Source of the DNA: Haliotis rubra
Lineage: Eukaryota
Reading direction: 5' to 3'
DNA length: 64,000 nucleotides
NCBI RefSeq assembly: GCF_003918875.1
Contig: NW_025767123.1
Span: 868,001 to 932,000 of the forward strand
Shown here: one piece after another, positions 646 through 59,743 of the stretch
Position numbering within the stretch: the stretch's first letter is position 1
How the letters are laid out: each line of letters starts with the position of its first letter
Translations under genes and position numbers: made by a program
The notes under the pieces: generated by a model
What the model was told of the DNA's origin: nothing
Databases searched by the model: none
Seen by the model: the letters and a program-made list of their open reading frames with translations, nothing else

Positions 646-2831
646 TTAGTCATTTTCAAAGCCTCCAATCAGGTTAAAGCGGTCTCCGAAAACGCCATCC
701 CCAGTGAACCCCGACACCGACAGCCGATACTCCGTGGCCTCGTCACCCACGGAGAAGGTGTTGTAAGATACTTGTCCGGGAGTGCTATCAAAATTCTTCA
801 ACGATATGTACAGCAAGTAAGCTCTGACGCTGGTCAGAGCATGCATCTTCTCCAGACCCAGCCACATGTAACAGTTGGAGTGGGTGAAACCAGACTTGTA
901 GTCGGCCCAGGGAACGTCGAGGTACGTCACGGGCTCAGCCTCACATCCACTGATGGTTTTGTCCCTGAACATGATCATGGCGGTGACTCCTTGACATTCC
1001 AAGTCAAACGGTTGTGCGGCTTTGGTCGGCCAGACAGTGTAGGTGCCAGTAGAATTACCAACGTACAGGGAAACGTCTGTACAGTCTGAAACAGTGACAT
1101 GATGACTGTCAAACACAGGTCAGTGATGGACAATGATGGACAAGAGCAATGAAGGAATCAACCAAGAACATCAATGTGTTAGTGACGTGACTGACCTAGA
1201 TGCATGTACAGTGACAACCTGAGAGTCGAAACCCACCGTCACAGGTTTCCTTCATGCCAAATGGACGCAGTTTCTATCTGGCGTTACCGAAGGAAAGTGA
1301 TATTCTTAACATGAACTCTTTCATCTTTTGCTTCGGTGAGGAGATCGTCATATAACTGAAGATTTACCTTCTATCCTGGTCTCACATATCCCTCCTGTAA
1401 AGGCAGGCAGACAGAGACAGGCATCAGCATCAAGGGTTCCTCCATTCTGGCAAGATGGCGAGGTCTAAAACAAAATAGGTGTTCAATGTAATAAAAAATA
1501 TAAAATATAGAAAGGAAAGCTTAACTGGAGGTTACAAGGTGAAGCGCTTGGGTAAGAGGCATAAGGACGAGTGTATTTCTTAAAAATGGATCTTCCACTA
1601 TATTTTGTATTGCAATATAGAAAAACTATTTATGTCGCCATTTGTGAATGCAACCTATCCACGATTACTCTTGTTTATTTTGGGTTTAAAGAAAAATGTA
1701 ACAATGAGCTAAATCATTTTTTAACATCAGGGGCGTTTAAGGTAGTGTGGTGCTTAAAGTGTTCGTTCGTCAAGCCGCCTCAAGATTCCCAACATGGGTC
1801 CAATATGTGAAGCTATAAGGATAGTTTAAGGATATATTATGTTCTTGTCACGATATTGGCGAAATACTTTATATTGTACTTCACTTACTCTCTGGAGGGA
1901 GGAGACCCAAAAATTGGTCTTCACACATCGTACCAATGCGGAGAGTCGAACCCGGGTCTTCGGCGTGACGAGCGAACGCTTTAACCACTGGGCTACCCCT
2001 GCAGCCCCCAACTCAGTGGAATGGCTTCAAGTTTCCAAAAGTTAACTGTCCCTTCATGTGGAGTAATATTCCACCAGTTCCAGATTTTGGTGTTCACATT
2101 TCTCAACTTTTTGAGGTACAGTCAGACATGCTCGTTGGATCACCATGTCAAAGAGCATCATTCGACTCTTGCTCAGAAGTTGTCTCATCAAGGTTAGGAC
2201 ACAAAATGCATGAGTTTTTATTGTAGACATGTGGCAGAAATTTCAAAATCTGGCACATCAGTGACAAAAGATGATCTCCGATGCAATTCCTTATTTTGAC
2301 TTTTACCCAACAGTCCCGATATTCTCAGGTGAACAATTTACTTGCCTATGTTTATGACACTGGTGGGGCAGGATACGCTAAGATCTGGTATCATCACTGT
2401 TTTTGTGCTGATTCATAATACATTCTCAAGACACAGATAGAATTGTACAATAGATTTCTTTTAGATGTGGAAAGGTGTCGCTCATATGCTTTGAATATAT
2501 TCAAATTAGAACTCACCTGACTGGAAGTGGGGAACTCAGTGAAAACCTTGCAGGTAAGGTTGGGAACACTGACAGGAACGACACGCTGCTCCATTGTCAA
2601 GACGGAGCATTTGTTGTCGTCGTTGCAGTAGATGAGACCGGTGCAGTTGGTGACGCCGTTGCAGGTGTTGGCACATTCGAGAGCCGAGGTTGTCTCTACG
2701 TAGTCGAAGACCATTGTTGCATCAATATGTGTCTGTTCTTCCTTGGAAAACCGCTGTGCAGAACACTGAGGTGAGCAGTTGACATTCACTGCTGTATAAA
2801 CAGTTACAAGCAAGAGTTGAAAACAAATCAT
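646..2831 (-). pseudogene. PAN/apple-EGF-fibrinogen-related gene copy A1, 3'-truncated in exon 3
   Basis: Exon 1 2831-2517 (MICFQ...SSQ|GTGAGT), exon 2 1464-1368 (TSPSCQNGGTLDADACLCLPAFTGGICETRIE, AG/GT ends), exon 3 from 1085 (DCTDVSLY...). Homology to paralogues stops at ~671 (GDRFNL), followed by unrelated IGGFEND* (stop 646-648). The FReD C-terminal part is missing relative to 41871-44091. Confidence 0.8.
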
Positions 2832-3574
2832 ATTTTGATTGCAGTGTAAGAAGAAGTTTCAAGATCGGCTCCAACAACCGTACCACTGTGATATGTGTGA
2901 CAGATCACCTGACTGTTTCCCTGGATGTCTGTGTTTGACTTTAACTATAACTGTGTTTGACCATTACCATGACTTCATGATATATCTGTATCCATAAAAT
3001 GAAAGTTTCCTTTTGTCTGACAGCATGGCACGCAATACTCAATTAAACGTGGTGATTCTTAATTCTACCTTATCTCAAAGAAGAACAAAACTAAGATCAG
3101 ATAATGATATTTAATTAAAGATATAGATTTTTTTCATTTTTTAACATTTGTTGTATACGCTGAGCATATTGACACTTCGTCACATTCACACTTGGGGTGA
3201 AAATATTGTTCTGCTTCAACACCTATTTTATTCCAACACAATTGTCTCTAAGTCATTAAGCGAAATTCGCGATATGGGTTTCGTTTGGATTCAAATCCCC
3301 ACAATGAAACGGTATATTTACACATTCTACACAGGGATTCAATGAGCTTTCAATTATTGGATGACTATTACTGACTTGTCTGAGGATCGTTCCTGCACAC
3401 TGTATAGCCTCGGGGTGCTAGTGTGAAGCAAAGAACTCTTGAAATACACAAAGATCGGTGGTCAACTTTGTATTTAATTGAAGAAACTTTAGGTCTAATT
3501 GTGTATCTTAGTAAACAAAACGAAGGTGAAATCTGTTTACTCATAAAATATACTGTCAATACAAACCCAAGTTT

Positions 3575-4400
3575 GAGCTACATACTGCCCTTGAGCAAGT
3601 TCATGATACAGCAACAGGGGCTGATGATAATCACTATCAGCTCCGAAAGCATTTGCCTGATTCATATCTGGAAACACTTCTAGATATGTTTGAAAAAATA
3701 TGGACATCAGAGAATTTTTCGCCCTCGTGGCGTAATGCCATTGTGGTCCCTATATCAAAACGTGGCCAAGATCATACTGATCCTTCTAATAACAGACCAA
3801 TATCTATAAAACCATGGAACGAGTGGTTAATAATAGATTATTTTGTACTTGGAAACCAATAACTTAATGAATAATATACAAAGTGGTTTCCGATGTAACA
3901 ATGATCATATGCCAGGTTAGAATCCTTTGTTAAAAATGCCATAGTATCTAAACAACATGTTCTCTCAATTTTCTTCGATCTTGAAAAAGCCTACGATACC
4001 ACTTGGAAGCACGGTATTCTGAAGGATGTACATGATATTGGTTTGAGAGCTCGTTTACCTCATTTTATCTCCAAATTTGTAACAGACAGGCATTTTCGCC
4101 CTGGGTCCACCCTGTCTGATCATTACAGTCAGGATCAGGGTGTTCAACAATTTGCCAGTATTTTGTCTTTCAGAGGTTTTAACTGATTCAGTTGATGGAT
4201 CACTTTTCGTGGATGATTATAATGTTTTTTGTCGTGGTGACAATAAATTTCTCAAATGGTCAATTGAAAATGGTTATAAATTTTCTAAATCAAATACAAA
4301 TTGTTATATCTGCATAAGGACCTAGAACTATTTTTAAATGGCACTCCCATCCAAGTTGTAAAGGAGGCCAATTCTTGCGACTTATCTTTGACTCTCATTT
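3575..4400 (+). mobile_element. Decayed non-LTR retrotransposon RT fragment (I/Nimb-like)
   Basis: WRNAIVVPISKRGQDHTDPSNNRPIS, QSGFR, FFDLEKAYDTTWKHGI, SLFVDDY in broken frames. Confidence 0.8.
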
Positions 4401-4863
4401 GATTGAGTGAGTGAGTTTAGTTTTACGCCGCACTCAGCACTATTACGGCTACATGGCGGCGGTCTGTAAATAATGCAGGTGTGCGAGGAAGGATGGAGAC
4501 GGCACAGCACAGGTAAATGAATCTATAACTTTGTCGGCACTTGCGCATCAGCATTGTGGGATGTCAAGGTCATTGGTGTCAAGGACACAGTATGATAACA
4601 ACAGCGAAGGAGACGTGTTTGATTGAGTGACTTGTCACGGTTTTACCTTTCTGCATAAAAGACAGACGTTGTGTGTACATATGTCACGGGGAACGTAATG
4701 TTCCATCACGTCAGCTACAGCCACAGAACCTCCAACAGCTGGTACATGCACTGCAGGGAGAATGTGTGAACATTCACCAGGCCACAATTCGCAATCTGAT
4801 TGGGTCATAGGGGCGACGATGCCAGTCAGTTCTCTACTCTTATGGGGGGACATACAAGATACT

Positions 4864-5019
4864 GAGTTTGGATTTACGCCGCTTTTAGCAATATTCCAGC
4901 AACATCACGGCGGGGCACACCAGAAATGGGCTTCACACATTGTACCCATGTGGGGATTCGAACCCGGGTCTTCGGTGTGACGAGCCAACGCTTTAACCAT
5001 TAGGCTGCCCTACCGCCCC
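4864..5019 (-). mobile_element. tRNA-derived SINE (family 1)
   Basis: Reverse complement has A-box TAATGGTTAAAGCG and B-box GGGTTCGAATCCC, plus the shared 3' GCTGGAATATTGCTAAAAGCGGCGTAA. Confidence 0.8.
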
Positions 5020-5534
5020 TGAAATTTAAACAATGTATTATTTATATTATACATAAAGTATACATCTGAAAACTAGTTTTGCGTTTATTTGTTTCTTCTT
5101 TCTTGGCAGACTATATTCCCTATTGAGAGCAGGTGACATAGCCATCAGGATATCTACATTTTGATTAGGACTGAGAACTCAGGGTGCACGTTCAGATATA
5201 CTACTGAAGGCTTAAATTTAACTACAGTTTTCATAATTGAAAGAGGTTAACATAATGACATAACATAATTTACATAAGTAGCAACAACAGAAGAATAGCA
5301 TTGCAACAACGTGATGGACAGGGTCCACATGATGAGGAGGCAAATCAAATGGGACTAATCATACAAGCGTGAGATGGAGCGATTCACTCAGGGGGAAGCA
5401 GACATGACTTAACAGACAGCGAATTCCACACACTCTGAATAGCAATGTCAATGCATCACAACTGAAATTATCCCAAGACTCCAAAACATCCAAGTCATAC
5501 TGAAGGTGGCCAAAGACGGTATTATAGACATTGT

Positions 5535-5540
5535 TTTATT
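5535..5540 (-). other. Candidate polyadenylation signal AATAAA for B1 (47144-47149 for B2)
   Basis: First AATAAA I found on the minus strand after the stop codon, lying beyond the short 44-bp array. Confidence 0.4.
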
Positions 5541-5574
5541 TTAGTTTTAATAAACCTCAGTGCTGTACATTCCC

Positions 5575-5725
5575 TTGCAAAAGTACCGCACATGTATAGT
5601 GCATATGTCGTGAAAGTTGTGTACGAGGACGGTACATGTATAGTGCATGTGTCATGAAAGTTATATGCCAGTACCGTACATGCATAGCTCATATGTCGTG
5701 AAGGCTATGTGCAAATGCCGTTTAC
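5575..5725. repeat. 44-bp minisatellite, short array (~3 units) downstream of B1
   Basis: Degenerate units of GTGTCGTGAAGGTTATGTGCAAGTACCGTGCATGTATAGTGAAT. Confidence 0.8.
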
Positions 5726-5752
5726 ATATCGTTAACCATTAGGGAGTCAGTG

Positions 5753-8721
5753 TTAGGCAGGATATATGAACATGTAGATGCTTTTGCATTCGGAAGGGGT
5801 GCCATCAGCAAGAATCCAATAAATGTCATATCGTTGGTGAGGATTCGTCTGACAGACATCCAACCTGTTCCACCAGGCTCCACGATGCCACTCAGCACAA
5901 GGGTTGACTGAGTTGTTGCAGTGATCCTTGGCACAGAAGTGACTACCATCCAGGGTTGACGCTGGATCCCCGAGGTTGAAGCGGTCTCCGAAAACGCCAT
6001 CCCCGGTGAACCCGGACACCGACAGCTGATACTCCGAAGCCTCGTCACCGACGGAGAAGGTGTTGTAAGCTACTTGTCCGGGAGTGTTATCAAATCTCTT
6101 CAGTGACATGTACAGCGAGTAAGATCTGACGCTGGTCAGAGCATGCATCTTCTCCAGACCCAGCCACATGTAACAGTTGGAGTGGGTGAAGCCAGACTTG
6201 TAGTCGGCCCAGGGAACGTCGAGGTACGTCACGGGCGCCGCCTCGCAGCCACTGATAGTTTTGTCCCTGAACATGATCATAGTAGTGACGCCTTGACATT
6301 CCAAGTCAAACGGTTGTGCGGCTTTGTTCGGCCAGACTGTGTAGGTTCCAGTAGAGTTACCAACGTACAGGGACACGTCTTTACAGTCTGAAACAGTAAA
6401 ACATTGACTCTCAAACATAGGACAATGGTGGACAAAAGCAAAAGTGTCATATATCAAGGGCATCAATGTGTTAGTGAGTTGGACATAAACCAACTTTGTA
6501 CAATATTCGAATTGGTTAAAACATAGACATGTTATGAATGAACTGTGACCCATCATACGAAGTAAGAGAGTCAACCCATTTTGAGCAGCATCGTCTATTA
6601 GCTTGACGACGAAACACTTTGGTGAAATTCATGAGCTTGGTTGGTGCCGACTGACCTGGAAGCATGTACAGTGACAACCTGAGGTTCGAACCCACCATCA
6701 CTGGTGTTTCTCGCGCCTAACTGACGCAACTTCTTTATGGCGGTACTGATGGAAGGTGATATTCTTAACAGGAATTCTTTAGGGATTCATCTTTTGCTTC
6801 CTTGCAGAGATCTTCACGATTGGTGAGTCCGGTTACACATACAAATGAAACTTCTGGGAAATGACCCTTACAAAACAGGATCACATAAATATGTCACGAT
6901 GCCAAAATATTCCAAATCTGTAACTGAAGGTTTACCTTCCATCCTGGTCTCACACTTCCCTCCTGTAAAGGCAGGCAGACAGAGACAGACAGCACCATCA
7001 AGGGTTCCTCCATTCTGGCATGATGGCGAAGTCTGAAACAAAACAGGTGCTGTTGGTTTTTCTCTAGTTCAAAACAAACAAAGGAAAGCTATACCAGATG
7101 TTTGCAGGTGGAAAACACTTTAAAGGAAGAACAACTGGCAGGTTTCTTTAAAATGCGATTTCCAATAGCTTACAATGCTGGCTTGTTATGCCGAAAGGTA
7201 CGGGTTCGATTCCCCTTATGGATATAATGTCTGAAGCCCATTTCTGGGGTTCCCCACAGTCAGATTCCTTTATTGCTCAAAACAAACATAGGAAAGCCAT
7301 ACCAGATGTTTGCACGGGGAAAACACTCAGAGGACTGACTGACTGACTGAGTTTGGTTTTTCGCCGCTTTTAGCAATATTCCAGCAATATCACGGCGGGG
7401 GACACCAGAAATGGTCTTCACTCATTGTACCCTTTTGGGATTCGAACCCAGGTCTTCGGCGTGACGAGCCAACGCTTTAACCACTAGACTACCCCACCGC
7501 CCCAACACTCAGAGGAAGAACAACTGACAGGTTTCTTCAAAATGCGATTTCCAATAGCTTACAGTGCTTGCTTGTTATGCCGAAAGGTACGGGTTCGATT
7601 CCCCTTATGGATATAATGTCTGAAGCCCATTTCTGGGGTTCCCCACAGTCAGATTCCTTTATTGCTGAAGGCGGAGTAAAACCAAACTCGTTTGCCCATT
7701 TTAACTTTACCCCAAAGAAAACAACGCAGTTACTACACATTTCTGGATTTCTCATATCAGTTGTAAAGACAAAATATGATATAATCTAGTTTATACAAGT
7801 TTTATATACAGTCTCTATGTGGAACTCGAACCAATATAAGTCTTTGTTATTTCAAAGAAGATATGATCTATGTACCTACAATTATACGTGCAACCTATCC
7901 ACTCAAAGTATTTGTTATGTCCTGTTAAGGAAAAGTGTCACAAGACTTGAGTATTTACACAAGCGGAATTCAATCAAGACAAACATGGATTTTCAACCTA
8001 AGAGGTGTTGGGGTAGCCTTGTGGTTACAGTGCTTCCTTGTTATGCCAGAAGGTACGGGTTCGATTCCCCTTTGGATATAATGTCTGAAGCCCATTTCTG
8101 GGGTTCCCCACAGTCAGATTCCTTCCAAACTCGTTTGCCCATTTTAACGTTACCCAAAAGAAAACAACAACGAATACTACACATTTCAGGATTTACAGTC
8201 TCATATTAGTTGTACACACAAAACATGACGTTATGTCAAACTCGTTAGGAAACGGGAATTTCACACGCTCAATTTGACAGAGTAGAAATCATGATGCGTT
8301 TTAGAGGGAGATGTCTGAAGCCAGTCATTGTATCTTTCATATTTAATTCTTTAATATCTTTAATTGATTTACAATTATCTCCCCTGAATATATTCAAATT
8401 TGAACTCACCTGACTGGAGGTCGTGACCTCTAAGAATGCCTTGCAGGTCGGGTAGGGAACGCTGACAGGAACGGAAGGCTGATCCAATGTCAACATGGAG
8501 CATCTGTTGTCGATGTTGCAGTAAATGAAACCGGTGCAGTTGGCGACGCCTTTGCAGGTGATGGCACATTGAGGGACTGACGTCGTCTGTATGTAGTCGA
8601 AAACCATTGCTGCGTCAACACCTGTCTGTACCTCCTGGTAAAAACTCGAAACGGTACATTGTGCACAAAGGATTGCAGTCAATCCTGCAAAACTAGTAAG
8701 TAAAAGGTGATACGATTTCAT
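5753..8721 (-). CDS. Secreted PAN/apple-EGF-fibrinogen C-terminal domain protein, copy B1 (347 aa, intact)
   Basis: Exons 8721-8410 (312 nt, phase 0), 7032-6936 (97 nt, TSPSCQNGGTLDGAVCLCLPAFTGGKCETRME) and 6387-5753 (635 nt) total 1044 nt in frame with canonical GT-AG. Hydrophobic signal peptide, CxxxC PAN pattern, FReD motifs WADYKSGF, WLGLEKMHALT, FSVGDEASEYQLSV, CAEWHRGAWW. Confidence 0.88.
7335..7503 (-). mobile_element. tRNA-derived SINE (family 1) with 13-bp TSD
   Basis: TSD AACACTCAGAGGA at 7322-7334 and 7504-7516. Empty site in B2 at ~48722. Confidence 0.88.
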
Positions 8722-8784
8722 AATTTCCTTCGTGAGATACTTATAGAAGTCTTTCAGTCCGAGCTACTTTCCTTCGACTGTCGC

Positions 8785-8865
8785 AGTGTGATGTGTGACA
8801 GAACTACTCTTGTCCCCCACGCTGTCTGTGTTTGGCCGTTACCATGACTACATTATATATCTGAC
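8785..8865 (-). promoter_or_regulatory. Conserved proximal upstream block (TATA-like) shared by A, B and C genes
   Basis: Plus-strand TTACCATGACTACAT(T/G)ATA(T/C)ATCT and TGTGAT..GTGACA motifs recur ~65-160 nt upstream of all six start codons (~2887-2990, 17443-17516, 44147-44247, 50117-50188, 59808-59881), although more distal flanks differ between A and B/C. Confidence 0.45.
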
Positions 8866-9674
8866 CACATGGCGAGGGTTGCATTGTGGTTCCACCTTCT
8901 TCATAATGATATGATAGAATGGTTGTTGACTTGTTTTGAGAGTATAGAGTTAATTATGTGGATTTAAGATACATTGCATATTGACTCATATTCATAATCC
9001 TCACTTTTGTCATTAAGTATGTAAGAATTCCCGTTCATATACAATAACGTTATTGTCCTTTCGTGTCATTAAAAGATATAAGCGACTAGTGTCTTAGTAT
9101 GACAGAGGTTAGATGACCTTTACACTGTGAGTTTTAACTACTATATTTCCCCGTTCAAACCTCGGGATCACAATTAAACGCCTGTATTCTTCCTGGCACA
9201 AATTTCGCCAATTTTATTCTTGCGATTACACACCTACAGTCTGGATTAAGTACTGGGGCCGGGACTCGTTAAACGTAGGTACTTTTGGCCACGAAATTCC
9301 TCTCGTTATTATTCTTGCAATGCTCCCTGGAGTTACGAGGAAATACGGAAGCATTCCATTGGTCAATGGATATTTGTAGCCTTATGTGTTGAAACTGTTA
9401 GTGTACGTATTCAAACATACTAAGAGTCCTTGTATGACACAAATACTTCAAGACGATTAAGTCGTTTGTATATATTGAATTTGAGAAAACCTTTCTCTGG
9501 TTTTGTTTCAAAGTCAGTTACGACAACATAATGCATGTGCATTCACCATAATCAAACATAATGACATGATACCAATACTTATTCCTGTTTCGGGCTAATA
9601 TTATATCATTAATGATGTGTTAATTAGTCACTTCAAAACTGATTTGCGTTTTGCGAAAGACTGTTCCTTTGACT

Positions 9675-10060
9675 GCCTCTACAAGAACAGTACTCTACAA
9701 GTCCCTCCCTTATCTAACGGAATTCTACAAATTCCCATTCTTATCTAACGGTACTCTACCACTTTCATCTAACAGTACTCCACAAGTTCCACCCTTATCA
9801 AACGGAACTCTACTCCCACCTTCATCCAACAGTTCCCAAGTTCTCACCCTTATCTAATGGTACTCTACAAGTTCCCAGCCTTATCTAATGGTACTCTACC
9901 AGTTCCCACCTTCATCTAACAGTACTCTACAAGTTCCCTTATTCCCGTATCTAACGGTGGTGCGACTCTATAAGTTTCCATCCTTGTCTAATGGTACTCT
10001 ATAAGTTTCCACCTTCATCTAACGGAATTCTGCAGGTTTCCCACTCTTATCTATCAGTAT
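9675..10060. repeat. 31-bp minisatellite upstream of B1
   Basis: Units of CTCTACAAGTTCCCACCCTTATCTAACGGTA. Confidence 0.88.
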
Positions 10061-10636
10061 GTTCCTTCCATCAATTTAACACTTCAGTTACCTTTCACAT
10101 TCATATGTGTTATTTATTTTACGGTGTGTAAAATATTGTTTTATCAACTTGTCTGCCACCCCACGGACGTAAAACAGACTGGTGACCGTCGATCCATGTT
10201 ATCAATATCGGTATTTACTGTGGTTTTAATGTAGCGAATTATTGATTCATTTGTGGAGCTGGAACAAGCCGCTAATGACTTGCGAGCTATAAACTGTTGT
10301 CAACTGAGGTAAGCCGAACGGAACAATCTCGCAATTTCAACCTCTGGAAACGAGCGAAATGTACTTAAAGTGCGAGAATGCGTGATCGCAAGAAATACCA
10401 CACAATCGTTTAGTTTATATCAAACACAGCAAGAGTTGGCAAAGAGATTGTTTTACCTACAACTTTGTAAACATGAACATAAAATACCGTGAATTAATAT
10501 GTATATGCCATGATGCATTGGTAATTTGCTGTAATACTCCTGGTTACATGCAGTTTGCTTCACCATACGGGAGAGTTGATACATAATGCAGCAACCAATC
10601 GAAAATAATATACTTGTAAGAGATTACTGAAAAAAC

Positions 10637-10796
10637 GGGGTAGTCTAGTGGTTAAAGAGTTCGCTTGTCACGCCGAAGACCCGGGTTCGATTCCCCATAT
10701 GGGTACAATGTGTGAAGCCAATTTCTGGTGTCCACGGCGGGATATTGCTGGAATATTGCTACAAGCGGCGTCAAACTAAAATCACTCACTCACTCA
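10637..10796 (+). mobile_element. tRNA-derived SINE (family 1)
   Basis: GGGGTAGTCTAGTGGTTAAAG...CCGGGTTCGATTCCC...(CACT)n tail. Duplicate at 53183-53342, degraded copies at ~1738-1815, ~1905-2010 and ~25081-25235. Confidence 0.82.
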
Positions 10797-47335: not shown

Positions 47336-47359
47336 TCGTTAACCATTAGGGAGTCAGTG

Positions 47360-50050
47360 TTAGGCAGGATCTATGAACATGTAGATGCTTTTACATTCGT
47401 GAGGGGTACCATCGTCAAGAATCCAATAAATGTCATATCGTTGGTGAGGATTCGTCTGGCAGACATCTAGCCTGTTCCACCAGGCTCCACGATGCCACTC
47501 GGCACAAGGGTTGACTGAGTTGTTGCAGTGATCCTTGGCACAGAAGTGACTCCCATCCAGGGTTGTAGCTGGGTCCCCGAGGTTGAAGCGGTCTCCGAAA
47601 ACGCCATCCCCAGTGAACCCCGACACCGACAGCCGATACTCCGAGGCCTCGTCACCCACGGAGAAGGCGTTGTAAGACACTTGTCCGGGAGTGCTATCAA
47701 ATGTCTTCAGTGACATGTACACCCAGTAAGCTCGGACGCTGGTCAGAGCATACACCTTCTCCAGACCCAGCCACATATAACAGTTGGAGTGGGTGAAACC
47801 AGACTTGTAGTCGGCCCAGGGAACGTCGAGGTACGTCACGGGCGCAGCCTCACAGCCACTGATGGTTTTGTCCCTGAACATGATCATAGTAGTGACGCCA
47901 TGGCATTCTATGTCAAACGGTTGTGCGGAGTTGGTCGGCCAGACTGTGTAGGTTCCAGTAGAGTTACCAAGGTACAGGGACACGTCTTTACAGTCTGAAA
48001 CAGTAAAACATTGACTGTCAAACATAGGACAATGGTGGACAAAAGCAAAAGTGTCATATATCAAGGGCATCAATGTGTTAGTGACTTGGACAAAAACCAA
48101 CTTTGTACAATATTCGAATTGGTTAAAACAAAGACAACTTGTTATGAATGAACTGTGACCCATCATACGCAGTAAGAGAGTCACCCCATTTTGAGCAGCA
48201 TCGTCTATCAGCTTGACGACGAGACACTTTGGTGAAACTCATGAGCTTGGTTGGTGCCGACTGACCTGGAAGCATGTACAGTGACAACCTGACGTTCGAA
48301 CCCACCATCACTGGTGTCCCTCGCGCCTAACTGACGCAACTTCTATATGGCGGTACTGTTGGAAGGTGATATTCTTAACAGGAATTCCTTAGGGATTCAT
48401 ATTTTGCTTCCTTGCAGAGATCTTCACGATTGGTGAGTCCGGTTACATATACAAATGAAACTTCTGGGAAATGACTCTTACAAAACAGGATCACATAAAT
48501 AGGTCATGATGCCAAACAGTCCATATCTGTAAGTGAAGGTTTACCTTCCATCCTGGTCTCACACTTCCCTCCTGTGAAGGCAGGCAGACAGAGACGGACA
48601 GCACCATCAAGGGTTCCTCCATTCTGGCATGATAGCGAAGTCTGAAACAAAACAGGTGCTGTTGGTTTTCTCTAGTTCAAAACAAACATAGGAAAGCCAT
48701 ACCAGATGTTTGCAGGGTGAAAACACTCAGAGGAAGAACAACTGGCAGGTTTCTTCAAAATGCGATTTCCAATAGCTTACAGTGCTTGCTTGTTATGCCG
48801 AAAGGTACGGGTTCGATTCCCCTTATGGATATAATGTCTGAAGCCCATTTCTCGGGTTCCCCACAGTCAGATTCCTTTATTGCTGAAGGCGGAGTAAAAC
48901 CAAACTCGTTTGCCCATTTTAAATTTACCCAATAGAAAACAACGAAGAATACGACACATTTCTGGATTTCTCATATCAGTTGTAAAGACAAAATATGATA
49001 TAATCTAGTTTATACAGGTTTTACATACAGTCTCTATGTGGAACTCGAACCAATATAACTCTTTGTTATTTCAAAGAAGATATGATCTATGTACCTACAA
49101 TGATACGTGCAACCTATCCACTCAAAGTATTCGTTATGTCCTGTTAAGGAAAAGTGTCACAAGACTTGAGCATTTACACAAACGGAATTCAATCAAGACA
49201 AACATGGATTTTCAACCTAAGCGGTGTTGGGGTAGCCTTGTGGTTACAGTGCTTGCTTGTTATGCCAGAAGGTACGGGTTCGATTCCCCTTATGGATATA
49301 ATGTCTGAAGCCCATTTCTGGGGTTCCCCACAGTCAGATTCCTTTATTGCTGAAGGCGGAGTAAAACCAAACTCGTTTGCCCATTTTAACTTTACCCAAA
49401 AGAAAACAACAAAGAATACACATTTCAGGATTTACAGTCTCATATTAGTTGTACCCACAAAACGCGACGTTATGTCAAACTCGTTAGGAAACGGGAATTT
49501 CACACGCTCAATTTGACAGAGAAGAAATCATGATGAGTTTTAGAAGGAATATGCGGGAACCCGAAGGTGAGTTCGGCACATTCAAGCACAACACGATATT
49601 CGACTGTTCTAATTGTTCAATATCGTCCAGTCACGATATAGCTGAAACCAGTCATTGTATATTTAAATATGTTATCCCACACATGTTCATTCAGGATATA
49701 CAAGTATCTCTCCTGAAAATATTCAAATTTGAACTCACCTGACTGGAGGTCGTGACTTCTAAGAATGCCTTGCAGGTCGAGTAGGGGACGCTGACAGGAA
49801 CGGAAGGCTGATCCGATGTCAAAATGGAGCATCTGTTGTCGATGTTGCAGTAGATGAAACCGGTGCAGTTGGCGACGCCGTTGCAGGTGATGGCACATTG
49901 AGGGACTGACGTCGTCTGTACGTAGTCGAAAACCATTGCTGCGTCAACACCTGTCTGTACCTTCTGGTAAAAACTCGAAACGGTACATTGTGCACAAAGG
50001 ATTGCAGTCAATCCTGCAAAACCTGTAAGTAAAAGGTGATACGATTTCAT
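47360..50050 (-). CDS. Secreted PAN/apple-EGF-FReD protein, copy B2 (347 aa, intact frame, EGF Cys->Arg)
   Basis: Exons 50050-49739, 48641-48545 (TSLSCQNGGTLDGAVRLCLPAFTGGKCETRME) and 47994-47360. Canonical splice sites. Confidence 0.87.
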
Positions 50051-50864
50051 AATTTCCTTCGTGAGATACTTATAGAAGTCTTTCAGTCCGAGCTACTTTC
50101 CTTCGACTGTCTCAGAGTGACGTGTGACAGAACTCTTGTCCCCCACGCTGTCTGTGTTTGACCGTTACCATGACTACATTATATATCTGACTACATGGCA
50201 AGGGTTGCATTGTGGTTCCAGCTTCTTCATAATGATATGATTGAATGGTTGTTGACTTGTTTTGAGAGTATAGAGTTAATTATGTGGATTAACGTTACAT
50301 TGCATATTGACTCATATTCATAATCCTCACATTTGCCATTAAGTATGTAAGAATTCCCGTTCATATACAATAACGTTAATGTCCCTTCGTGTCATTAAAA
50401 GATATAAGTGACTTGTGTCTTAGTATGACAGAGGTTAGATGACCTTTACACTGTGAGTTTTAACTACTATATTTTCCCGTTCAAACCTCGGGATCTCAAT
50501 TAAACGCCGGTATTCTTCCTGGAACAAATACGAGGAAATACGGAAGCATTCCATTGATCAATATCTATGTGTAACCTTATGTGTTGAAACCGTAAGTGTG
50601 CGTACTCAAACATACTGAGAGTCCTTGTATGACGCAAATACTTCAAGATAATTTTGTCATTTGTTAATTGTATTTGAGAAAACCTTTCTCTGATTTTGTT
50701 TCAATGTCAGCTGCGACGACATAATGCATGTGCATTTAATCATACCCAATCATAATGACATGATACCAATACTTATTCCAGTTTCGGGTTAATATTATAT
50801 CATTAACGATGTGTTAATTTGTAATTTCAAAAAATGCGTTTTGCGAAAGACCGTTCCTTCGACT

Positions 50865-51420
50865 GCCTCTACAAGAACAGTACTCTACAAGTTCCCACCC
50901 TTATCTAATGGTACTCTACAAGTTCCCACCCTTATCTAACGGTACTCTACCAGTTCCCACCTTCATCTAACAGTACTCTACAAGTTCCCACCCTTATCTA
51001 ACGGTAATCTACCAGTTCCCACCAGTATCTAACTGTACTCTACAAGTTCCCACCCTTATGTAATGGTACTCTACAAGTTCCCACCCTTATCTAACGGTAA
51101 TCTACAAGTTCCCACCCGTATCTAACGGTACTCTACCAGTTCCCACCAGTATCTAATGGTACTCTACAAGTTCCCACCCCTATCTATCGGTACTCTACAA
51201 GTTCCCACCCGTATCTAACGGTACTCTACCAGTTCCCACCCGTATCTAACTGTACTCTACAAGTTCTCACCCTTATGTAATGGTACTATACAAGTTCCCA
51301 CAAGTTCCCCCGTATCTAACGGTACTCTACAAGTTCCCACCCTTATCTAACGGTACTCTACAAGTTTCCACCTTTATCTAAGGGAATTCTGCAGATTCCC
51401 ACTCTTATCTAACAGTACCT
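50865..51420. repeat. 31-bp minisatellite upstream of B2
   Basis: Longer, more homogeneous array of the same unit. Short remnants at ~19890-19965 and ~62270-62335 upstream of the C genes. Confidence 0.9.
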
Positions 51421-51925
51421 GCCACTTTGTTATGCGCATCAGTTAACACAAGTTACCTTTCACATTCATATGTTTTGTTTATTTTACGGGGTGTATATAG
51501 TATTCTATCAACTTGTCTGCTATCGGACGTAAAGAGGGACTGGTGACCATCGATCCATGTTAATATCAATATTGGTATTTACTGGGGTTTTAATGTAGTG
51601 AATTATTGATTTTCCCCTCTTTTTATTCATTTATGGAGCTGGAACAAGACGCTGATGACTTCTCGTCAACTAATGTAATCTGTACTGAACAATCTCGCAA
51701 TTTCCACCTCTGGAAACGAGCGAAATATGCCTAAAGTGCGAGAATGCGTGATCGCAAGAAACACCACACAATCGTTTAGTTTATATCTTGACCAACAACA
51801 AAAAAGTTGATAAAGAGATAGTTTTACTAACGACGTTGTAAACATGTACAAAAGTACCATGAATTAACATGTACTTGCTACAATGACGCATTGGTAATTT
51901 GCTGTAACACTCCTGGTTCCATGCA

Positions 51926-52164
51926 CTCGTGAAGGTCCGGGATAGAATTGATCTTCAGTAACCTATGCTTGTCATAAGAGGCGACTAACGGGATCGGGTG
52001 GTCAGGCTCGCTAGCTTGCTAGACACATGTCATCGGTTCCCAATTATGCAGATCGATGCACAAGCTGTTGATCATATGACTGTCTGATCCAGACTCGATT
52101 ATTTACAGATCGCCGCTATGTAGCTGGAGTATTGCTGAGTGCGGCGTAAAACTGAAGTCACTCA
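51926..52164 (+). mobile_element. SINE family 2 with 16-bp TSD, private to block 2
   Basis: TSD CTCCTGGTT(C/A)CATGCA. Empty site at ~10537-10552. Confidence 0.85.
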
Positions 52165-52189
52165 CTCCTGGTTACATGCAGTTGCTTAA

Positions 52190-53099
52190 GAAATACAGTT
52201 CGCTCTACCACCATGTATAGTGTAATAAAGCACACTTTCGCCCTGAACTATTATAGTTAAAGTACGAGGACGCTTGTGTCCGAGTGCTTTAACGTTATAA
52301 TAGTTCAGGTCGAAAGTGTGCTTTATTACACTATACATGGTGGTAGAGCGATCTGTATTTCTTTTCTTAGATGCCAAATTTAATACTTTCTAAGGATAAT
52401 TACGATTAATTTAAGGCAGAAAACAAACGACGGTGTCAGTGACCTACATTAAGAATCCTTGCACAGGGCTAACTGGCGCGCTGTTCTATTGGTGTGTCTG
52501 CCCCCCATACGTTAAGACGAACGTTACCAGAAAAAAATTATAACAGTTTGATGCCGGTTTACGTTCGGATTAAATATCTTCTCTGAATTATTATTATTAC
52601 ATCTGTCATTAACGTAAACCATATGGGACAATATGAACGTCGCATTTCTACTACCAACGTAAGTTTAGATCAGTACATCCAGATGAAGCTTAGTAGTCAA
52701 GCGACATTCCACGGTTGCATTGTGGGAATGTAAACATTGCGAACCGTACCGTGTCGCTGCAAACTTGTGAATCGAAATGACACATTTTCACCGTCGTAAA
52801 AGATAAACGTAATGTTTCCACCAGTGATGTTAGCCGCGTGAAGCAACTGCAAACCAAGAAACGGGATGCAACGGAGTAGTTTACTGTAGGAGGCCGTACG
52901 AGGCGATGACAACTGACATGCATCGTGACGTCGCTTACATTGTGACGTCATGTAAAATGGTTCGATTACGAGGGGGCACACTAGAATGGCGCAATAACGG
53001 GATAACGTCATTCAATTGTTACGTCATCAAAAACCTATCCCTTTATTGTCTGATAATGTATTTTTTTTTCGATTGTTCTAACCGCTAGGCATCTTAGAA
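52190..53099. mobile_element. TTAA-flanked insertion with a ~175-bp terminal hairpin
   Basis: Absent from block 1 (site ~10557-10565). TTAA at 52186-89 and 53100-03. ~77-bp inverted arms at 52188-52264 and 52283-52363. Confidence 0.75.
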
Positions 53100-53182
53100 T
53101 TAAGCATACGGGAGAGTTGATACATAATGCAGCGACCAATCGAAAATAATATACTTGTAAGAGATTATACTAAAAAAAAACC

Positions 53183-53342
53183 GGGACAGTATAGTGGTTA
53201 AAGAGTTCGCTTGTCACGCCGAAGACCCGGGTTCGATTCCCCCTATGGGTACAATGTGTGAAGCCAGTTTCTGGTGTGCCCGGCGTGATATTGCTGGAAT
53301 ATTGCTACAAGCGGCGTCAAACTAAAATCACTCACTCACTCA
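53183..53342 (+). mobile_element. tRNA-derived SINE (family 1), block 2 copy
   Basis: Homologous to 10637-10796. Confidence 0.8.
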
Positions 53343-54554
53343 ACAGTTATTTTGTCATATGGCGGCGGTCTTTAAACAACGACGTCTTGACCAGACAACA
53401 ACGTTCTCGATGACAAAGTCAGGCCAAGTATCCATATAACTAAACACTGAGTGAGAATGAACGAGATGAGAAATGTACCCATGACCTGTGATCGTATCTA
53501 GTCACTAATATGCAGTATGTCTTGTCTCAATCATAGCTGTGTCTATAATGAATCAGAACACAGATTTCATTAGGATGTCTTCAGCAACCCATGCTTGTCG
53601 TAAGAGGCGACGAACGGGATCAGGTGGTCAGGCTCGCTTGGTTGACTCACTGCAAGTCATCGTATCCCAAATAGGTAGATCAATGCTCGTGCTGTTGATC
53701 GCTGGAATCCCCGGTCCAGACTCGATTATTTACAGACCGCTGCCATAGCTGAGTGCGGCGTTAAACAACAACCAAATCAAAACAATGGGATGGCTTTTGA
53801 AACAACAAGGGTACATATTTAATACATTTAAGCGGTTATAGCATATCCATGTCCGAATACATTGAAGACATAGTCAAACAATCAGGGCATCAAGATAATC
53901 TGGTATAATAAACTGGACAATACATGTATTTTGCACATAAAAGTGAACGTTCAATTCTGACAATGTGTAACAGAAAATGTTTTCAAAAGAATCTACTAAA
54001 AGTAAATAAATAAACAAAACCTGGATCTGTGGCTTTTGTGTAATATTACCAAAACTGTGAATGTCACGTCAGGTGAAACCTGAACTTGAAATGGCGCATG
54101 AAATTTCGCTCAGGAATGACAGAATGTTGAACTGAGGAATCTAGGCGTGGTACACAAGTATACTGCCGATGACAGTTTAAATTGAATTACGGAATTACGG
54201 AGTCTCGTGATGAGAAAACCAATTAAATAGGACTAAACATACATCCGAACACTTACGTAGACACGACTTCGAGGGGCACAAGCTCCGAAAGCAACACATA
54301 CCAACTGAAACAAGCCCAAAGACTACAAAACATCCAAGTCATACTGAAGGTGGCTAAAGACGATATTGCAGACATTGTCTTATTATGGGATTTAAGTTTT
54401 AATTTACTTCTTTGCTGTAAATTCCCCTTTCAGAACACATCTTGGTCTGAATGTCCTTCTTGTGAATTTTCTTTTCTGGCACAGTTTATGAACTGTGAAG
54501 TTTATGTAGATGTTCCATGCATTTATAGCATATATCTCGAGAAATTTATGTAAT

Positions 54555-55950
54555 TATGTACCGCGCATGTGTAGCGGATATGTCGTGAAGGTTATGTACA
54601 AGTACCTTGCAAGTATAGCGAATGCGTGGTGAAGGTTATGTGCATGTACCGTGCATAGGTCGTGAAGGTTATAACCAAGTACCGTGCATGTTTAGTGACA
54701 GTGTCGTCAAGGTTATGTGCATGTACCGTGCATGTATAGTGAATGTGTCGTAAAGGTTATGTGCAAGTATCGTGCAGAGGTCGTGAAGGTTATGTGCCAG
54801 TACCATGCATGTATAGTGAATGTGTCGTAAAGGTAATGTGCAAGTACCGTGCAGGTCTTGAAGGTTATGTGCCAGTACCGTGCATGTATAGCGGATGTGT
54901 CGTGAAGGTTATGTGCAAGTATCGTGCCTGTATAGCGGATGTGTCGGAAGGTTATGTGCCAGTACGGTACATGAACACCGAATGTGTCGTAAAAGTAATA
55001 TGCAAGTACCGTGCATAGGTCGTGAAGATTATGTGCAAGTACCGTGCATAGGTCGTGAAGATTATGTGCAAGTACCGTGCAAGTATAGCGAATGTGTGGT
55101 GAAGTTTATGTGCAAGTACCGTGCATGTATAGTGGATGTGTCGTGAAGGTTATGTGCAAGTACCGTGCAGATATAGTGAAGGTTATGCGCAAGTACCGTG
55201 CGTGTATAGTGGATGTGTCGTGAAGGTTATGTGCCAGTACCGTACCTGTATAGTGAATGTGTCGTGAAGGTTATGTGCAAGTACCGTGCAGGTATAGTGA
55301 AGGTTATGTGTAAGTACCGTGCCTGTATAGTGGATGTGTCGTGAAGGTTATGTGCAAGTACCGTGCAGGTATAGTGAAGGTTATGTGCAAGTACCGTGCC
55401 TGTATAGTGAAGGTTATGTGCAAGTACCGTGCAGGTATAGTGGATGTGTCGAGCAGGTTATGTGTAAGTACCGTGCCTGTATAGTGAATGTGTCGTGAAG
55501 GTTATGTGCAAGTACCGTCCAGGTATAGTGAAGGTTATGTGCAAGTACCGTGCCTGTATAGTGGATGTGTAGTGCAGGTTATGTGTAAGTACCGTGCAGG
55601 TATAGTGAATGTGTCGTGAAGGTTATGTGCAAGTACCGTGTACGTATTGTCGATGTGTCGTGCAGGTTATGTGCAAGTACCGTGCATGTATAGCGCATGT
55701 GTGGTCCAGGTTATGTGCAAGTACCGTGCCTGTATAGTGGATGTGTAGTGCAGGTTATGTGTAAGTACCGTGCAGGTATAGTGAATGTGTCGTGAAGGTT
55801 ATGTGCAAGTACCGTGTACGTATTGTCGATGTGTCGTGCAGGTTATGTGCAAGTACCGTGCATGTATAGCGCATGTGTGGTCCAGGTTATGTGCAAGTAC
55901 CCTGCATGTATAGCGCATGTGTCGAGAAGGTTATGTGCAAGTACCGTGCA
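54555..55950. repeat. 44-bp minisatellite, long array downstream of C2
   Basis: 44- and 33-bp units, with a 176-bp higher-order duplication near 55534-55886. Confidence 0.93.
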
Positions 55951-55990
55951 TATTGTTTATGCCTACTGACATTTTTAGGGAGTTTGAGTA

Positions 55991-58900
55991 TTAGGCAGGA
56001 TTTATGAACATATAGATGCTTTTACATTCGTGAACGGTACCATCGTCAAGAACCCAGTAAATGTCACGTTGTTGGTGAGGATTCGTCTGGCAGACATCTA
56101 GCCTGTTCCACCAGGCTCCACGATGCCACTCGGCACAAGGGTTGACTGAGTTGTTGCAGTGATCCTTGGCACAGAAATGACTCCCATTCAGGGTTGTAGC
56201 TGGGTCCCCGAGGTTGAAGCGGTCTCCGAAAACGCCATCCCCGGTGAACCCGGACACCGACAGTCGGTACTCCGAGGCCTCGTCACCCACGGAGAAGGCG
56301 TTGTAAGATACTTGTCCGGGAGTGCTATCAAACTTCTTCAAGGACATGTACAGCGTGTAAGGTCGGACACTGGTCAGAGCATACATCTTCTCCAGACCCA
56401 GCCACATGTAACAGTTGGAGTGGGTGAAACCAAACTTGTAGTCGGCCCAGGGAACGTCGAGGTACGTCACGGGCACCGACTCGCAGCCACTGATGGTTTT
56501 GTCCCTGAACATGATCATGGCGGTGACTCCTTCACATTCCAAGTCAAACGGTTGTGCGGCTTTGGTCGGCCAGACAGTGTAGGTGCCAGGAGAGTTCCCA
56601 ACGTACAGGGACACGTCTTTACAGTCTGAAACAGTGACATGATGACTGTCAAACACAGGTCACTGATGGACAATGATGGACAAGAGCAATGAAGGAATCA
56701 ACCAAGAACGCCAATGAGTTGGACAAACCATCTTTGAACAGTATTCGAATTGGTTAGAAATAGAGACTCTGTTATAACTCAACTGTGATTCTCAATACGA
56801 AATAAGAGAGTCAACTCGTTTTAAACAACATTTCAATTACAGCACTGTCTGTCAGCTTGACCACGTGACACGTTGGTGAAACCCATGAGTTCGGTTGGTG
56901 CCGACTGACCTGGAAGCATGTACAGTGACAACCTGAGGTTCGAACCCACCATCACTGGTGTCCCTCTTCTATATGGCAGTACTGATGGAAGGAGATATTC
57001 TTAAAGGTCACATGCAACCGGAAAACATAATGAAAACACAATTATCACTTATTCATGACATATAATATACATTGCTGATTGTGAAAAAAACCCAAATAAA
57101 CAAAATTATAAGCGTACAATCGCAAATCAAAAGAGTAATATTTTGTACTCGGGTTTACTTCCCTCGAAACGAAGCACCCGGGAGACCGAACCCAGTCAGA
57201 GCGAGTGGGCGTGCACTCAAGTTAAACGAAGTCTCTCATTGGCTGGTTCATTTGTCAATACCCTGAGGGCTCATTGTGTGTGTGTATATAGAGATGATCT
57301 GTTTGATTGGCATTTTAGAAGTATGGTGAGTAATAAGAAAGTAAGAGTGACAACGGTATAAGAATCCATACCGAAACGTCGCATCATATACAATAAAAGA
57401 AGTTGTTATCCATATGGAATGTGTATAGAGATGTTGGGTTTTGTAAATATATGCTCTCTGCATTGGCGTTCGATCCAATCAACAAATACTGAGATGGTGA
57501 ACAACTGCGTGGCTGGAAACTGTAGTTCGTCTAAGCAGGGATAATCTACAACATATAGTCTTCCTGGTCAAAGTACAAAGCAGGACTTGAAACTGACAAT
57601 GGATGCAGTTTGTTTGCAACCCACAGACATAATAACATGTCATGTGTACAAGTATCACACCTGCCTGTCTGTGTAATTACATAATGTGACAGAGACAGAA
57701 CTCAGGTGCAAGAGCCATCAATCAATGTATTTTGTTTATGGTGTATAGTCTGATAGGTGTTACGTTCAAATTGCATGTGGTCAATGATTGAAGTTGCGTA
57801 TTGCATATTGTCATTAGCAGACAGACAGGCAGACACATAGGTGTCAATAAAACAGACATTGAGTTTTTTCTGTGAAAGAGACTGCTTATCACAATCAACA
57901 TATTTTTCTATGTTTCCATAGACATGTATTAAAACATTCCAGTTTCAAGCTGAGCAATTTTTAACAATGAAATTAGTATTTCTAATTCTACACTTTCTTG
58001 AGAACTTATGGGACCAGTGTATTTTTATTACTGCAGACCCAAGATGCTTGTAATCACAAGAAACATCTATTGTTCTCCAATTTCGACCACAGCGATAATC
58101 CTTGCACGCGTCACTTGCTGTGTTTTTACGAGTCGCCTTCCCGGTTCAAGCCGCGCGAACCTAATCACTACGCATGCGCTATGGGCGCAGAACAGCTGTT
58201 GAAACCACTTTTCACCCCAGCGCTGGGGTGAAATTAGTGAATCGTTTGAACTACGATTTCGCGGGGTTTTTTTCATCGCGTTATTTTTCAACTTTATAAG
58301 TTGAATTTGCATTTTTGATAATTTGTTACTGTAAGTCCATACCGAAAGGTATCAGAATCTGCAAAGTTGTGTTTTGCGTTGCATGTGACCTTTAACAGGA
58401 ATTCTTTAGGAATTCGTCTTTTGCTTCCTTTCAGAGATCTTCACGATTGGTGAGTCCGGTTACATATACAAATGAAACTTCTGGGAAATGACCCTTACAA
58501 AACAGGATCACATAAATAGGTCATGATGCCAAAATAGTCCATATCTGTCACTGAAGGTTTACCTTTTATCCTTGTCTCACAGTTCCCTCCTGTGAAGGCA
58601 GATGGACACTGACAGGCAGCACCAAGAAAGCTTCCACCATTCTGGCAGGATGACGAGGTCTAAAACAAAACAGAGGTTGCTTTTCTCACATTTATACAAA
58701 GGAGGGCCACACCAGATGTTTGCACGGTGAAAGACCAAGGTAAGAAACATCACAACTGGCCAGTATCTTCAAAATGCGATTTCAAAAATACTTCTTTCTT
58801 ATCTCAAAGAAGAAATTGTTCTTGTACCTATAATGGTACGTGCAACCTATCCTCAAAGTACTCGTTGTGTCCTGTTTAAGAAAAGTGTCACAAGGCCTGA

Positions 58901-59743
58901 GCATTTACGCAAAAAGAATTCAATCAAGGCAAAAATGGATTTTCAACCTAAGAAGTGTTGGGGTAGCCTTGTGGTAACAGTGCTCACTTGGTATGCCAAA
59001 AGATACGGAATCGACTCCCCTTATGTATATGATGTCTGAAGGCCATTTCTAGTATTCCCCAAAGTCACATTCCTTTATTGCTAAAGGTGGTGTAAAACCA
59101 TACTCACTTGCCCATTTTAACATTATCCAAAATGCAACGACGAAGAATACTACACATTTCAGGATTTACAGGTTTTATATACAGTTGTTGTGTCCAACTT
59201 GTGGGAAGAAGCACATTCCACACGCTCAGTTTGACAGAGTAGAAATCATGATGAGTTATTGATGGTGATTTCGGCACATTCAAGTAGGACACGATTTTCG
59301 ACTGTTCTAATTGTTCAATATCGTCCAGTCACGATATGGCTGAAACCAGTCATTGTATCTTTCATATTTAATTCTTTAATATCTTTAATTGATTTACAAT
59401 TATCTCTGAATATATTCAAATTTGAACTCACCTGACTTGAGGTCGTGAGCTCTAAGAATGCCTTGCAGGTCGGGTAGGGGACGCCGACAGGAACGGAAGG
59501 CTGATCCGATGTCAACATGGAGCATCTGTTGTCGATGTTGCAGTAAATGAAAACGTTGCAGTTGGGGAAGCTGCTGCAAGTAATGGCACATTGAAGAACC
59601 GTCGCCGTCTCTACGTAGTCGAAAACCATTGCTGCGTCAACACCTGTCTGTACCTCCTGGTAAAAACTCGAAACGGTACATTGTGCACAAAGGATTGCAG
59701 TCAATCCTGCAAAACCAGTAAGTAAAAGGTGATACGATTTCAT
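55991..59743 (-). CDS. Secreted PAN/apple-EGF-FReD protein, copy C2 (347 aa, intact)
   Basis: Exons 59743-59432, 58659-58563 (TSSSCQNGGSFLGAACQCPSAFTGGNCETRIK) and 56625-55991. Canonical splice sites. Confidence 0.88.
57005..58391 (+). mobile_element. Non-autonomous Kolobok-like DNA transposon in intron 2 of C2
   Basis: Same TTAA site and TIRs as 14591-16020. Confidence 0.8.

Follow-up and report, generated by a model that had tools for sequence, protein, structure and literature searches.

A tandem cluster of PAN-EGF-fibrinogen-related genes in the abalone Haliotis rubra and its place in a molluscan gene family

The gene cluster

The genes considered here lie in a stretch of 64,000 nt from the blacklip abalone Haliotis rubra (NCBI RefSeq assembly GCF_003918875.1, contig NW_025767123.1, positions 868,001 to 932,000 of the forward strand); the whole stretch is called the window below and coordinates refer to it unless another sequence is named. 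Between positions 646 and 59743 it carries seven exons encoding a fibrinogen-related domain (FReD), all on the minus strand, which were found from the open reading frame (ORF) listing and by exon homology searches and are numbered c1 to c7. In six of the seven copies (c4 is the exception) the FReD exon is the last of three, behind a first exon for a signal peptide and a PAN/apple domain and a second, short exon for an EGF-like segment. Exon 1 opens with an ATG start and measures 312-315 nt in these six copies, in each of which exon 2 has a length of exactly 97 nt, and the introns of all six spliced models run GT..AG in phases 0 and 1. The exons, with the evidence for each in brackets, are:

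671..1085, minus strand: c1 exon 3, FReD, 3'-truncated (ORF, homology, block comparison)
1368..1464, minus strand: c1 exon 2, EGF-like, 97 nt (homology, splicing)
2517..2831, minus strand: c1 exon 1, signal and PAN type A (homology; 97% identical to c5 exon 1)
5753..6387, minus strand: c2 exon 3, FReD, intact (ORF, splicing)
6936..7032, minus strand: c2 exon 2, EGF-like (splicing)
8410..8721, minus strand: c2 exon 1, signal and PAN type B (identical to P0005 residues 1-104)
13558..14193, minus strand: c3 exon 3, FReD, frameshifted (Gnomon model P0007 ends at the same point)
16193..16289, minus strand: c3 exon 2, EGF-like (splicing)
17067..17378, minus strand: c3 exon 1, signal and PAN type B (splicing)
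34031..34594, minus strand: c4, FReD exon alone, 5'-cut (homology, Fibrinogen_C)
41871..42505, minus strand: c5 exon 3, FReD, intact (100% identical to P0001)
43257..43353, minus strand: c5 exon 2, EGF-like (splicing)
43777..44091, minus strand: c5 exon 1, signal and PAN type A (splicing)
47360..47994, minus strand: c6 exon 3, FReD, intact (Pfam, splicing)
48545..48641, minus strand: c6 exon 2, EGF-like, a conserved Cys replaced by Arg (splicing, alignment)
49739..50050, minus strand: c6 exon 1, signal and PAN type B (splicing)
55991..56625, minus strand: c7 exon 3, FReD, intact (ORF, splicing)
58563..58659, minus strand: c7 exon 2, EGF-like (splicing)
59432..59743, minus strand: c7 exon 1, signal and PAN type B (splicing)

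Reading frames are intact in c2, c5, c6 and c7 (347 aa in c2 and c7, 348 aa in c5) and broken in c1, c3 and c4. The final 220 nt of exon 3 are deleted in c1, where homology ends at 671, the ORF continues to a stop at 646 and about 600 bp of the sister copy are replaced by about 100 bp. Exon 3 of c3 has suffered a 2-nt insertion and a 1-nt deletion and stops after ...LYICP, and of c4 only exon 3 remains, short of its first 71 nt and still recognized as Fibrinogen_C (E 3.8e-17, 63 bits), exons 1 and 2 having both been looked for by homology and neither found. A preliminary description of this DNA had proposed seven copies of three-exon design, four intact and three broken, with an EGF exon of 97 nt. 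The copies and their positions are confirmed by exon homology and splicing in a window that contains no N, as is the length of the EGF exon in every copy that has one; the count of intact and broken frames stands with the caveat that c6 has lost an EGF cysteine, and the three-exon design is retained for six copies and withdrawn for c4.

The NCBI Gnomon models P0001, P0002 and P0007 correspond to c5, c6 and c3, with junctions identical to those of the spliced models, and the junctions likewise match in P0005, a chimera in which exons 1-2 of c2 are joined to exon 3 of c1. Two of the Gnomon models, those of c5 and c6, begin at an internal Met39 and are consequently devoid of the signal peptide and of the first PAN cysteine. 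The c5 FReD exon is 100% identical to the H. rubra protein named 'ryncolin-1-like' (P0001); the existing annotation is generic fibrinogen-like, with Pfam PF00147 only.

Domain composition

For the FReD, Fibrinogen_C (PF00147) is matched by c5, c6 and the Haliotis cracherodii orthologue P0027 with 73-79 bits against a cut-off of 22 (E ~1e-21). The full-length AlphaFold2 model, built on residues 137-471 of P0027 (P0027:137-471), has a mean predicted local distance difference test score (pLDDT) of 76, and its FReD matches FIBCD1, M-ficolin, FGL1 and TL5A in Foldseek (E ~1e-16, target template modelling (TM) score 0.72-0.81), with L-ficolin, angiopoietins and tenascins also among the fold matches. 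The four cysteines at the canonical FReD disulfide positions, one pair N-terminal and the other flanking the ligand site (Cys125, Cys154, Cys287 and Cys302), are present in the alignment in all members of the abalone clade and in nearly all relatives, their pairing being predicted. The deposited P0027 model carries a mariner transposase fragment at its N-terminus, an annotation artefact, and the H. asinina model P0026 has two consecutive PAN modules, either from a merged model or from a real PAN-PAN-EGF-FReD gene.

Since the PAN domain of the window copies falls below the Pfam threshold, it was assigned through profile and fold comparisons. A profile of the clade matches the apple domains of TgMIC4 (E 5e-7) and SML-2, and PAN_1 itself is matched by 20 of 28 colinear homologues (best E 3e-16). 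With a model of the PAN-EGF part (P0005:19-137, an exact match to c2; pLDDT 72.6), a fold search over 48,161 chains returned PAN/apple domains in all of the top 15 places (Z 5.9-8.5, over residues 6-84), among them plasminogen (Z 8.5), the HGF N domain (7.7), the apple domain of FXI/prekallikrein (7.2) and SML-2 (7.2), with 66-79 residues aligned; the Foldseek list for the same model likewise consists mostly of PAN structures. The EGF exon encodes 32 residues whose profile matches factor VII EGF1 and Notch EGF (E 5e-4 to 5e-3) and whose segment of the c2 model reaches pLDDT 84-89. It has four of the usual six cysteines, which by eye correspond to C2, C4, C5 and C6, without C1 and C3. The PAN module has 7 or 8 cysteines, depending on the point of signal cleavage, and the FReD has 9, and an inter-domain or inter-chain disulfide is therefore possible. 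Additionally, an extra PAN pair, Cys55/Cys80, is common to Argonauta P0073, H. asinina P0099, Lottia P0116, P0174 and the window clade and is absent in other members; it may mark an old subfamily, which matches a weak grouping in the tree.

No Ig, collagen or other Pfam domain was found in the copies or their homologues, only PAN and EGF preceding the FReD, and no long helix appears in the secondary structure of the predicted models. The order signal/PAN-EGF-FReD proposed in the preliminary description is thus supported by Pfam, the clade profile and the predicted folds, and its absence of a collagen, coiled-coil or Ig stalk agrees with the missing Pfam matches and the missing helix. Pfam taken by itself bears out Fibrinogen_C in the window copies and PAN_1 in the 20 of 28 homologues, and the PAN_1 scores of the window copies stay under the cut-off.

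The family across molluscs

A profile search run exhaustively over 1.84 billion representative proteins produced 5,431 matches, and among the best 150 of these about 25 proteins of 310-400 aa are colinear over PAN, EGF and FReD (profile ~4-280); a word-indexed protein search with the PAN-EGF part found only Haliotis proteins, the wider family being seen by the exhaustive search. The sources are gastropods (Nucella, Pomacea, Babylonia, Batillaria, Patella, Lottia and other Haliotis species), unionid bivalves (Potamilus and Sinanodonta) and a cephalopod (Argonauta), and the alignment of the colinear relatives keeps the cysteines of the PAN, EGF and FReD modules. The Lottia gene LOTGIDRAFT_152462 (P0116) is likewise divided into these three exons, at identical boundaries; in Pomacea P0178 there are four, the first two being equivalent and the FReD split in two. 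Five family genes are neighbours in Pomacea (L003); for the Nucella and H. rufescens members, look-ups of the surrounding genes yielded no entries. Intact full-length orthologues of the abalone clade occur in H. asinina and H. cracherodii. In the literature, a passage of the 2020 survey of Biomphalaria FReD proteins mentions PAN/apple domains in some Lottia FReDs, citing Gorbushin et al. 2010 (PMC7588048), and according to the same survey B. glabrata FREP1 bears a PAN/apple domain and FReM combines EGF with a fibrinogen (FBG) domain (PMC7588048). Literature searches returned no paper on abalone PAN-FReD proteins.

Judged by these sequence comparisons, the PAN-EGF-FReD architecture is pan-molluscan and not new, and both the exon design and the tandem arrangement are ancestral. 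The suggestion of the preliminary description that the architecture might be uncharacterised is not upheld, given its occurrence in three molluscan classes, the NCBI annotation, the Lottia exons, the Pomacea arrays and the survey (PMC7588048); a new domain architecture was rejected on account of this spread. It is only the remodelled FReD of the abalone branch that looks unusual, the rest of the design being known.

The altered FReD site of the abalone clade

In the maximum-likelihood tree the Haliotis sequences (H. rubra, H. asinina and H. cracherodii) form a monophyletic clade with 100/100 support, and its stem has a length of 1.96 changes per site, with internal branches of 0.06-0.30. The clade differs from other FReDs around the metal and ligand site. 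In FIBCD1, Asp393 and Asp395 are Ca2+ ligands and Tyr405, His415, Tyr431 and Trp443 form the acetyl pocket, which is conserved in TL5A and the ficolins (PMC3908420). The replacements in the clade are:

FIBCD1 Asp393, Ca2+ ligand: Cys in the clade (family alignment, every clade member)
FIBCD1 Asp395, Ca2+ ligand: Asn in the clade (family alignment, every clade member)
FIBCD1 Tyr405, acetyl pocket: His in the clade (in CAEWHRGAWW)
FIBCD1 His415, acetyl pocket: Gln in the clade (the residue following the second Cys)
FIBCD1 Tyr431, acetyl pocket: Leu in the clade (in W-x-L-A/D-DG)

Substitutions thus affect three of the four pocket side chains that were compared; positions 405, 415 and 431 could be aligned, the C-terminus, where the equivalent of Trp/Tyr443 would fall, being about 10 residues shorter. 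All cysteines are kept throughout the clade with a single exception in c6. Additionally, the FReD of the clade has five added cysteines, two of which, Cys275 and Cys280, lie on either side of the former Ca2+ site and are found jointly only in this clade. Their joint occurrence suggests that a Cys275-Cys280 disulfide may take over the loop-holding role of calcium, and an odd cysteine could, moreover, bridge domains or chains. A reading of the FReD as a lectin head is not supported: the residues that define binding in ficolins, TL5A and FIBCD1 are absent from it.

Origin and turnover of the array

The array consists of a three-gene block of about 21 kb (type A, B1 and B2) that was duplicated once, plus the c4 fragment, as follows from the colinearity of two segments; identity between them is 88-95% through exons, introns and spacers. 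Each includes an element of the Tc1/mariner type:

121..21000, unstranded: block 1, with c1, c2, c3 and a Tc1/mariner element, colinear with block 2
41067..63452, unstranded: block 2, with c5, c6, c7 and a Tc1/mariner element, colinear with block 1
18596-19696 and 60964-62064, plus strand: full-length Tc1/mariner transposase ORFs of 366 aa, with DDE_3 and HTH_Tnp_Tc3_2

The two transposase ORFs differ by a few residues only, and the element was copied along with the three genes, so that these are not independent insertions. Seven independent duplications of the FReD gene were considered and rejected in favour of one block duplication and a fragment. More copies of the family lie outside the window on the same contig (QXJH01000439.1, 699069-721494, reversed), at 11761-12772 and 20021-21323 of the reversed stretch. 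One of these is type-A-like with exons 2 and 3 only, 94-96% identical to c1/c5; its gene model of 132 aa begins without a PAN exon and breaks off early in the FReD. Next to come are exons 1-2 of a copy resembling type B, and the block thus has at least a third, partial copy. Synonymous divergence (dS) differs from exon to exon between the same two genes: it is 0.09 in PAN and 0.27 in FReD for c2-c3, and 0.52 in PAN and 0.11 in FReD for c1-c3. A mosaic of this kind is consistent with gene conversion between paralogues or with recombination of their exons. The block duplication and the three broken copies bear out the birth-and-death evolution that had been proposed.

Several repeats accompany the genes. 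A 44-bp minisatellite of about 31-40 copies stands some 40 nt past the stop of c3, c4 and c7 (12152-13518, 32297-33991 and 54558-55951), and a related 22-bp array occupies the equivalent place after c5 (41566-41818); c1 has lost this region by deletion, and array length is unequal between the duplicated blocks. A retroelement remnant (~27160-31943, minus strand) lies between the blocks and adjoins c4; it is richer in G and C (0.52) and comprises an RNase H-like reverse transcriptase domain (28246-28665, E 3e-8), as well as a number of long ORFs that match no Pfam family.

Selection on the copies

The ratio of nonsynonymous to synonymous divergence (dN/dS), computed pairwise between copies by the Nei-Gojobori method, ranges over 0.23-0.50 for whole genes, 0.16-0.46 for the FReD, 0.18-0.75 for PAN and 0.43-1.37 for the 32 codons of EGF. 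The copies are under purifying selection, somewhat relaxed, and there is no domain-wide diversifying selection. The young pairs between the blocks still stand at 0.30 (c2-c6), 0.42 (c3-c7) and 0.37 (c1-c5), values that speak against an array that is dead throughout. None of the copies varies in the former Ca2+ loop or its surroundings, and the variable positions include the C-terminal loops NPH-x-x-x-D and W-x-L-x-DG-x-x-x-E and a strand near SV-R/K-x-Y. The idea of a diversified recognition system, put forward in the preliminary description, finds no backing in the values of 0.16-0.75 for PAN and FReD. A somatic or hyperdiversified repertoire of the kind found in snail fibrinogen-related proteins (FREPs) was rejected, there being no Ig domains and a dN/dS below 1.

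Interpretation

With somewhat more confidence than doubt, we read the cluster as an abalone-only, fast-evolved, block-duplicated and partly decayed branch of the pan-molluscan family, encoding secreted two-module binding proteins whose FReD probably works without the canonical Ca2+/acetyl site. Each gene would give a product of about 347 aa made of a signal peptide, a PAN/apple domain, a four-cysteine EGF-like segment and a FReD, one domain per exon. The cluster would have grown when a block of A, B1 and B2 with its Tc1/mariner element was duplicated, after which the copies may have exchanged sequence exon by exon and c1, c3 and c4 decayed. From what is known of the family, the products would be extracellular binding proteins with two binding modules, of which PAN seems the more likely to bind glycans or proteins. 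The FReD would no longer use a Ca2+-supported acetyl pocket, its loop being probably held by the clade-specific disulfide; binding of its partner would then need no calcium and would involve another surface or another chemistry. A humoral or mucosal recognition role would be plausible.

Several results weigh against this reading. On the window copies PAN_1 scores 15.4-18.5 bits, under its cut-off of 21.4, and the signal peptide (a basic or polar start followed by 13-15 hydrophobic residues) was judged by eye. Three of the seven copies are broken, and c6, whose frame is intact, has Arg at an EGF cysteine conserved in 36 of 37 family members, which may be an early step of decay. The argument for the Cys275-Cys280 bridge comes from co-occurrence in the sequences only, and the papers searched give no binding data, ligand, tissue or function for any PAN-EGF-FReD member. 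As to expression, two run searches found no run on record as RNA that holds the locus, and no transcript-derived protein of the abalone clade was found among 5.8 billion proteins; canonical family members of other species do have transcript-derived entries. Four runs guessed to be RNA, few and small, were examined on c5: no exon-exon joint was seen and exons 1 and 2 were uncovered, with low-depth pieces (92-96% alike) on exon 3 only and heavy cover of a repeat in intron 2, a result that bears neither for nor against expression. The repeat itself (42800-43250) is an inverted-repeat element with depth up to ~140 in all four runs and nearly bare flanking exons, likely a high-copy element resembling a miniature inverted-repeat transposable element (MITE).

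Among the other explanations, the one that survives best is that the array is a decaying relic, its copies silent or nearly so, kept alike by gene conversion and without present function. The broken copies (three of seven), the lost EGF cysteine of c6, the copy outside the window with its 132-aa model only, the transposons inserted between the copies, an exon-wise mosaic that fits gene conversion and the failure to find RNA evidence would all be expected of it. They are set against a dN/dS well under 1 even in the young pairs c2-c6, c3-c7 and c1-c5, the intact full-length orthologues of H. asinina and H. cracherodii, and clade cysteines that are all kept save one in c6; moreover, the RNA runs are few, small and only guessed to be RNA. 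We regard a relic without function as unlikely.

A non-immune extracellular role, in matrix or mucus organisation, in angiopoietin- or FGL1-like signalling, or in reproduction or larval life, with the fast stem reflecting a changed protein partner, has a slightly lower standing. The locus holds nothing that points to a particular process, and arrays of many copies with frequent pseudogenes are found more typically among genes that serve defence or face the environment; on the other hand, protein binding occurs in many FReDs whose pocket is altered (the fold matches here include angiopoietins, FGL1 and tenascins), protein-protein contacts commonly involve PAN and EGF modules (PMC7588048), the clade is limited to one genus on a very long branch, and restriction to a narrow stage or tissue would be in keeping with transcripts that seem to be missing from the tissues usually sequenced.

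It is quite improbable that the products are ordinary ficolin/tachylectin-5-like lectins in which the FReD binds acetylated sugars with calcium, PAN-EGF serves as stalk or adaptor and the array forms a diversified immune repertoire, for despite a FReD fold nearest to FIBCD1, M-ficolin, L-ficolin and TL5A, both canonical disulfide positions retained, most variable positions that include the C-terminal loops near the former pocket, and multi-copy tandem arrays such as are typical of invertebrate immune lectins (established knowledge; for snails, PMC7588048), substitutions have removed both acidic Ca2+ ligands and, of the four pocket side chains compared, all but one, FReD dN/dS is just 0.16-0.46, and the former Ca2+-site loop is invariant in all copies.

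The preferred reading, a fast-evolved abalone branch of binding proteins, can be carried further, to a new design of FReD site with Cys275-Cys280 in place of calcium and a rebuilt acetyl pocket, which would act independently of calcium on a new class of ligand and be coupled to a PAN lectin head in a small protein without a stalk. In this extended form the proposal seems unlikely to us.

Comparison with known systems

Proteins with FReDs are central to invertebrate immune recognition, and work on them has focused on the Ig-bearing FREPs of snails and on bivalve FReDs. The cluster offers a compact natural set of variants, in which PAN and EGF each come in two types and the metal and ligand site of the FReD is altered, and abalone aquaculture has in it a candidate defence locus whose copy number is dynamic. 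No new category is defined by the cluster; its value is that of an entry point to an ignored family and to a possible replacement of a calcium site by a disulfide.

The window FReD resembles those of FIBCD1, the ficolins and TL5A in fold (TM 0.72-0.81) and in its canonical disulfide positions. Unlike these, the window proteins have no collagen, coiled-coil or membrane stalk, five site residues are replaced, and the C-terminal P-domain segment is shorter. The snail FREPs, which consist of immunoglobulin superfamily (IgSF) domains, an interceding region (ICR) and FBG, and with them B. glabrata FREP1 and FReM, are alike in having a C-terminal FBG behind variable N-terminal modules and in forming a multigene family, and some members also have PAN or EGF beside FBG (PMC7588048). 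Neither IgSF nor a coiled-coil interceding region was found in any copy or homologue of the window genes, however, and there is no sign in them of the high diversification of FREPs (dN/dS < 1).

The N-terminal domain has its best sequence-profile and fold matches in the apicomplexan lectins TgMIC4 (Toxoplasma) and SML-2 (Sarcocystis), for which the PDB entries include complexes with galactose and lacto-N-biose, so that PAN modules can be lectins; identity to the window domain is 12-25%, and both the number of cysteines (7-8 in the window) and the domain context differ. The closest likeness in overall design is to the molluscan PAN-EGF-FReD proteins (LOTGIDRAFT_152462; Pomacea canaliculata XP_025107595), which are annotated as 'fibrinogen-like protein 1', 'MFAP4-like' or 'fibroleukin-like' and share with the window genes the order of modules and a size of about 350 aa. 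As in the window, the Lottia gene has an intron immediately 5' of the 'DC' that opens the FReD, and Pomacea too has tandem arrays. Identity between the window clade and these relatives is only 21-28%, and the clade, unlike them, has lost the DxDND calcium motif, gained five FReD cysteines and come to carry a PAN domain of its own that lies below the Pfam cut-off.

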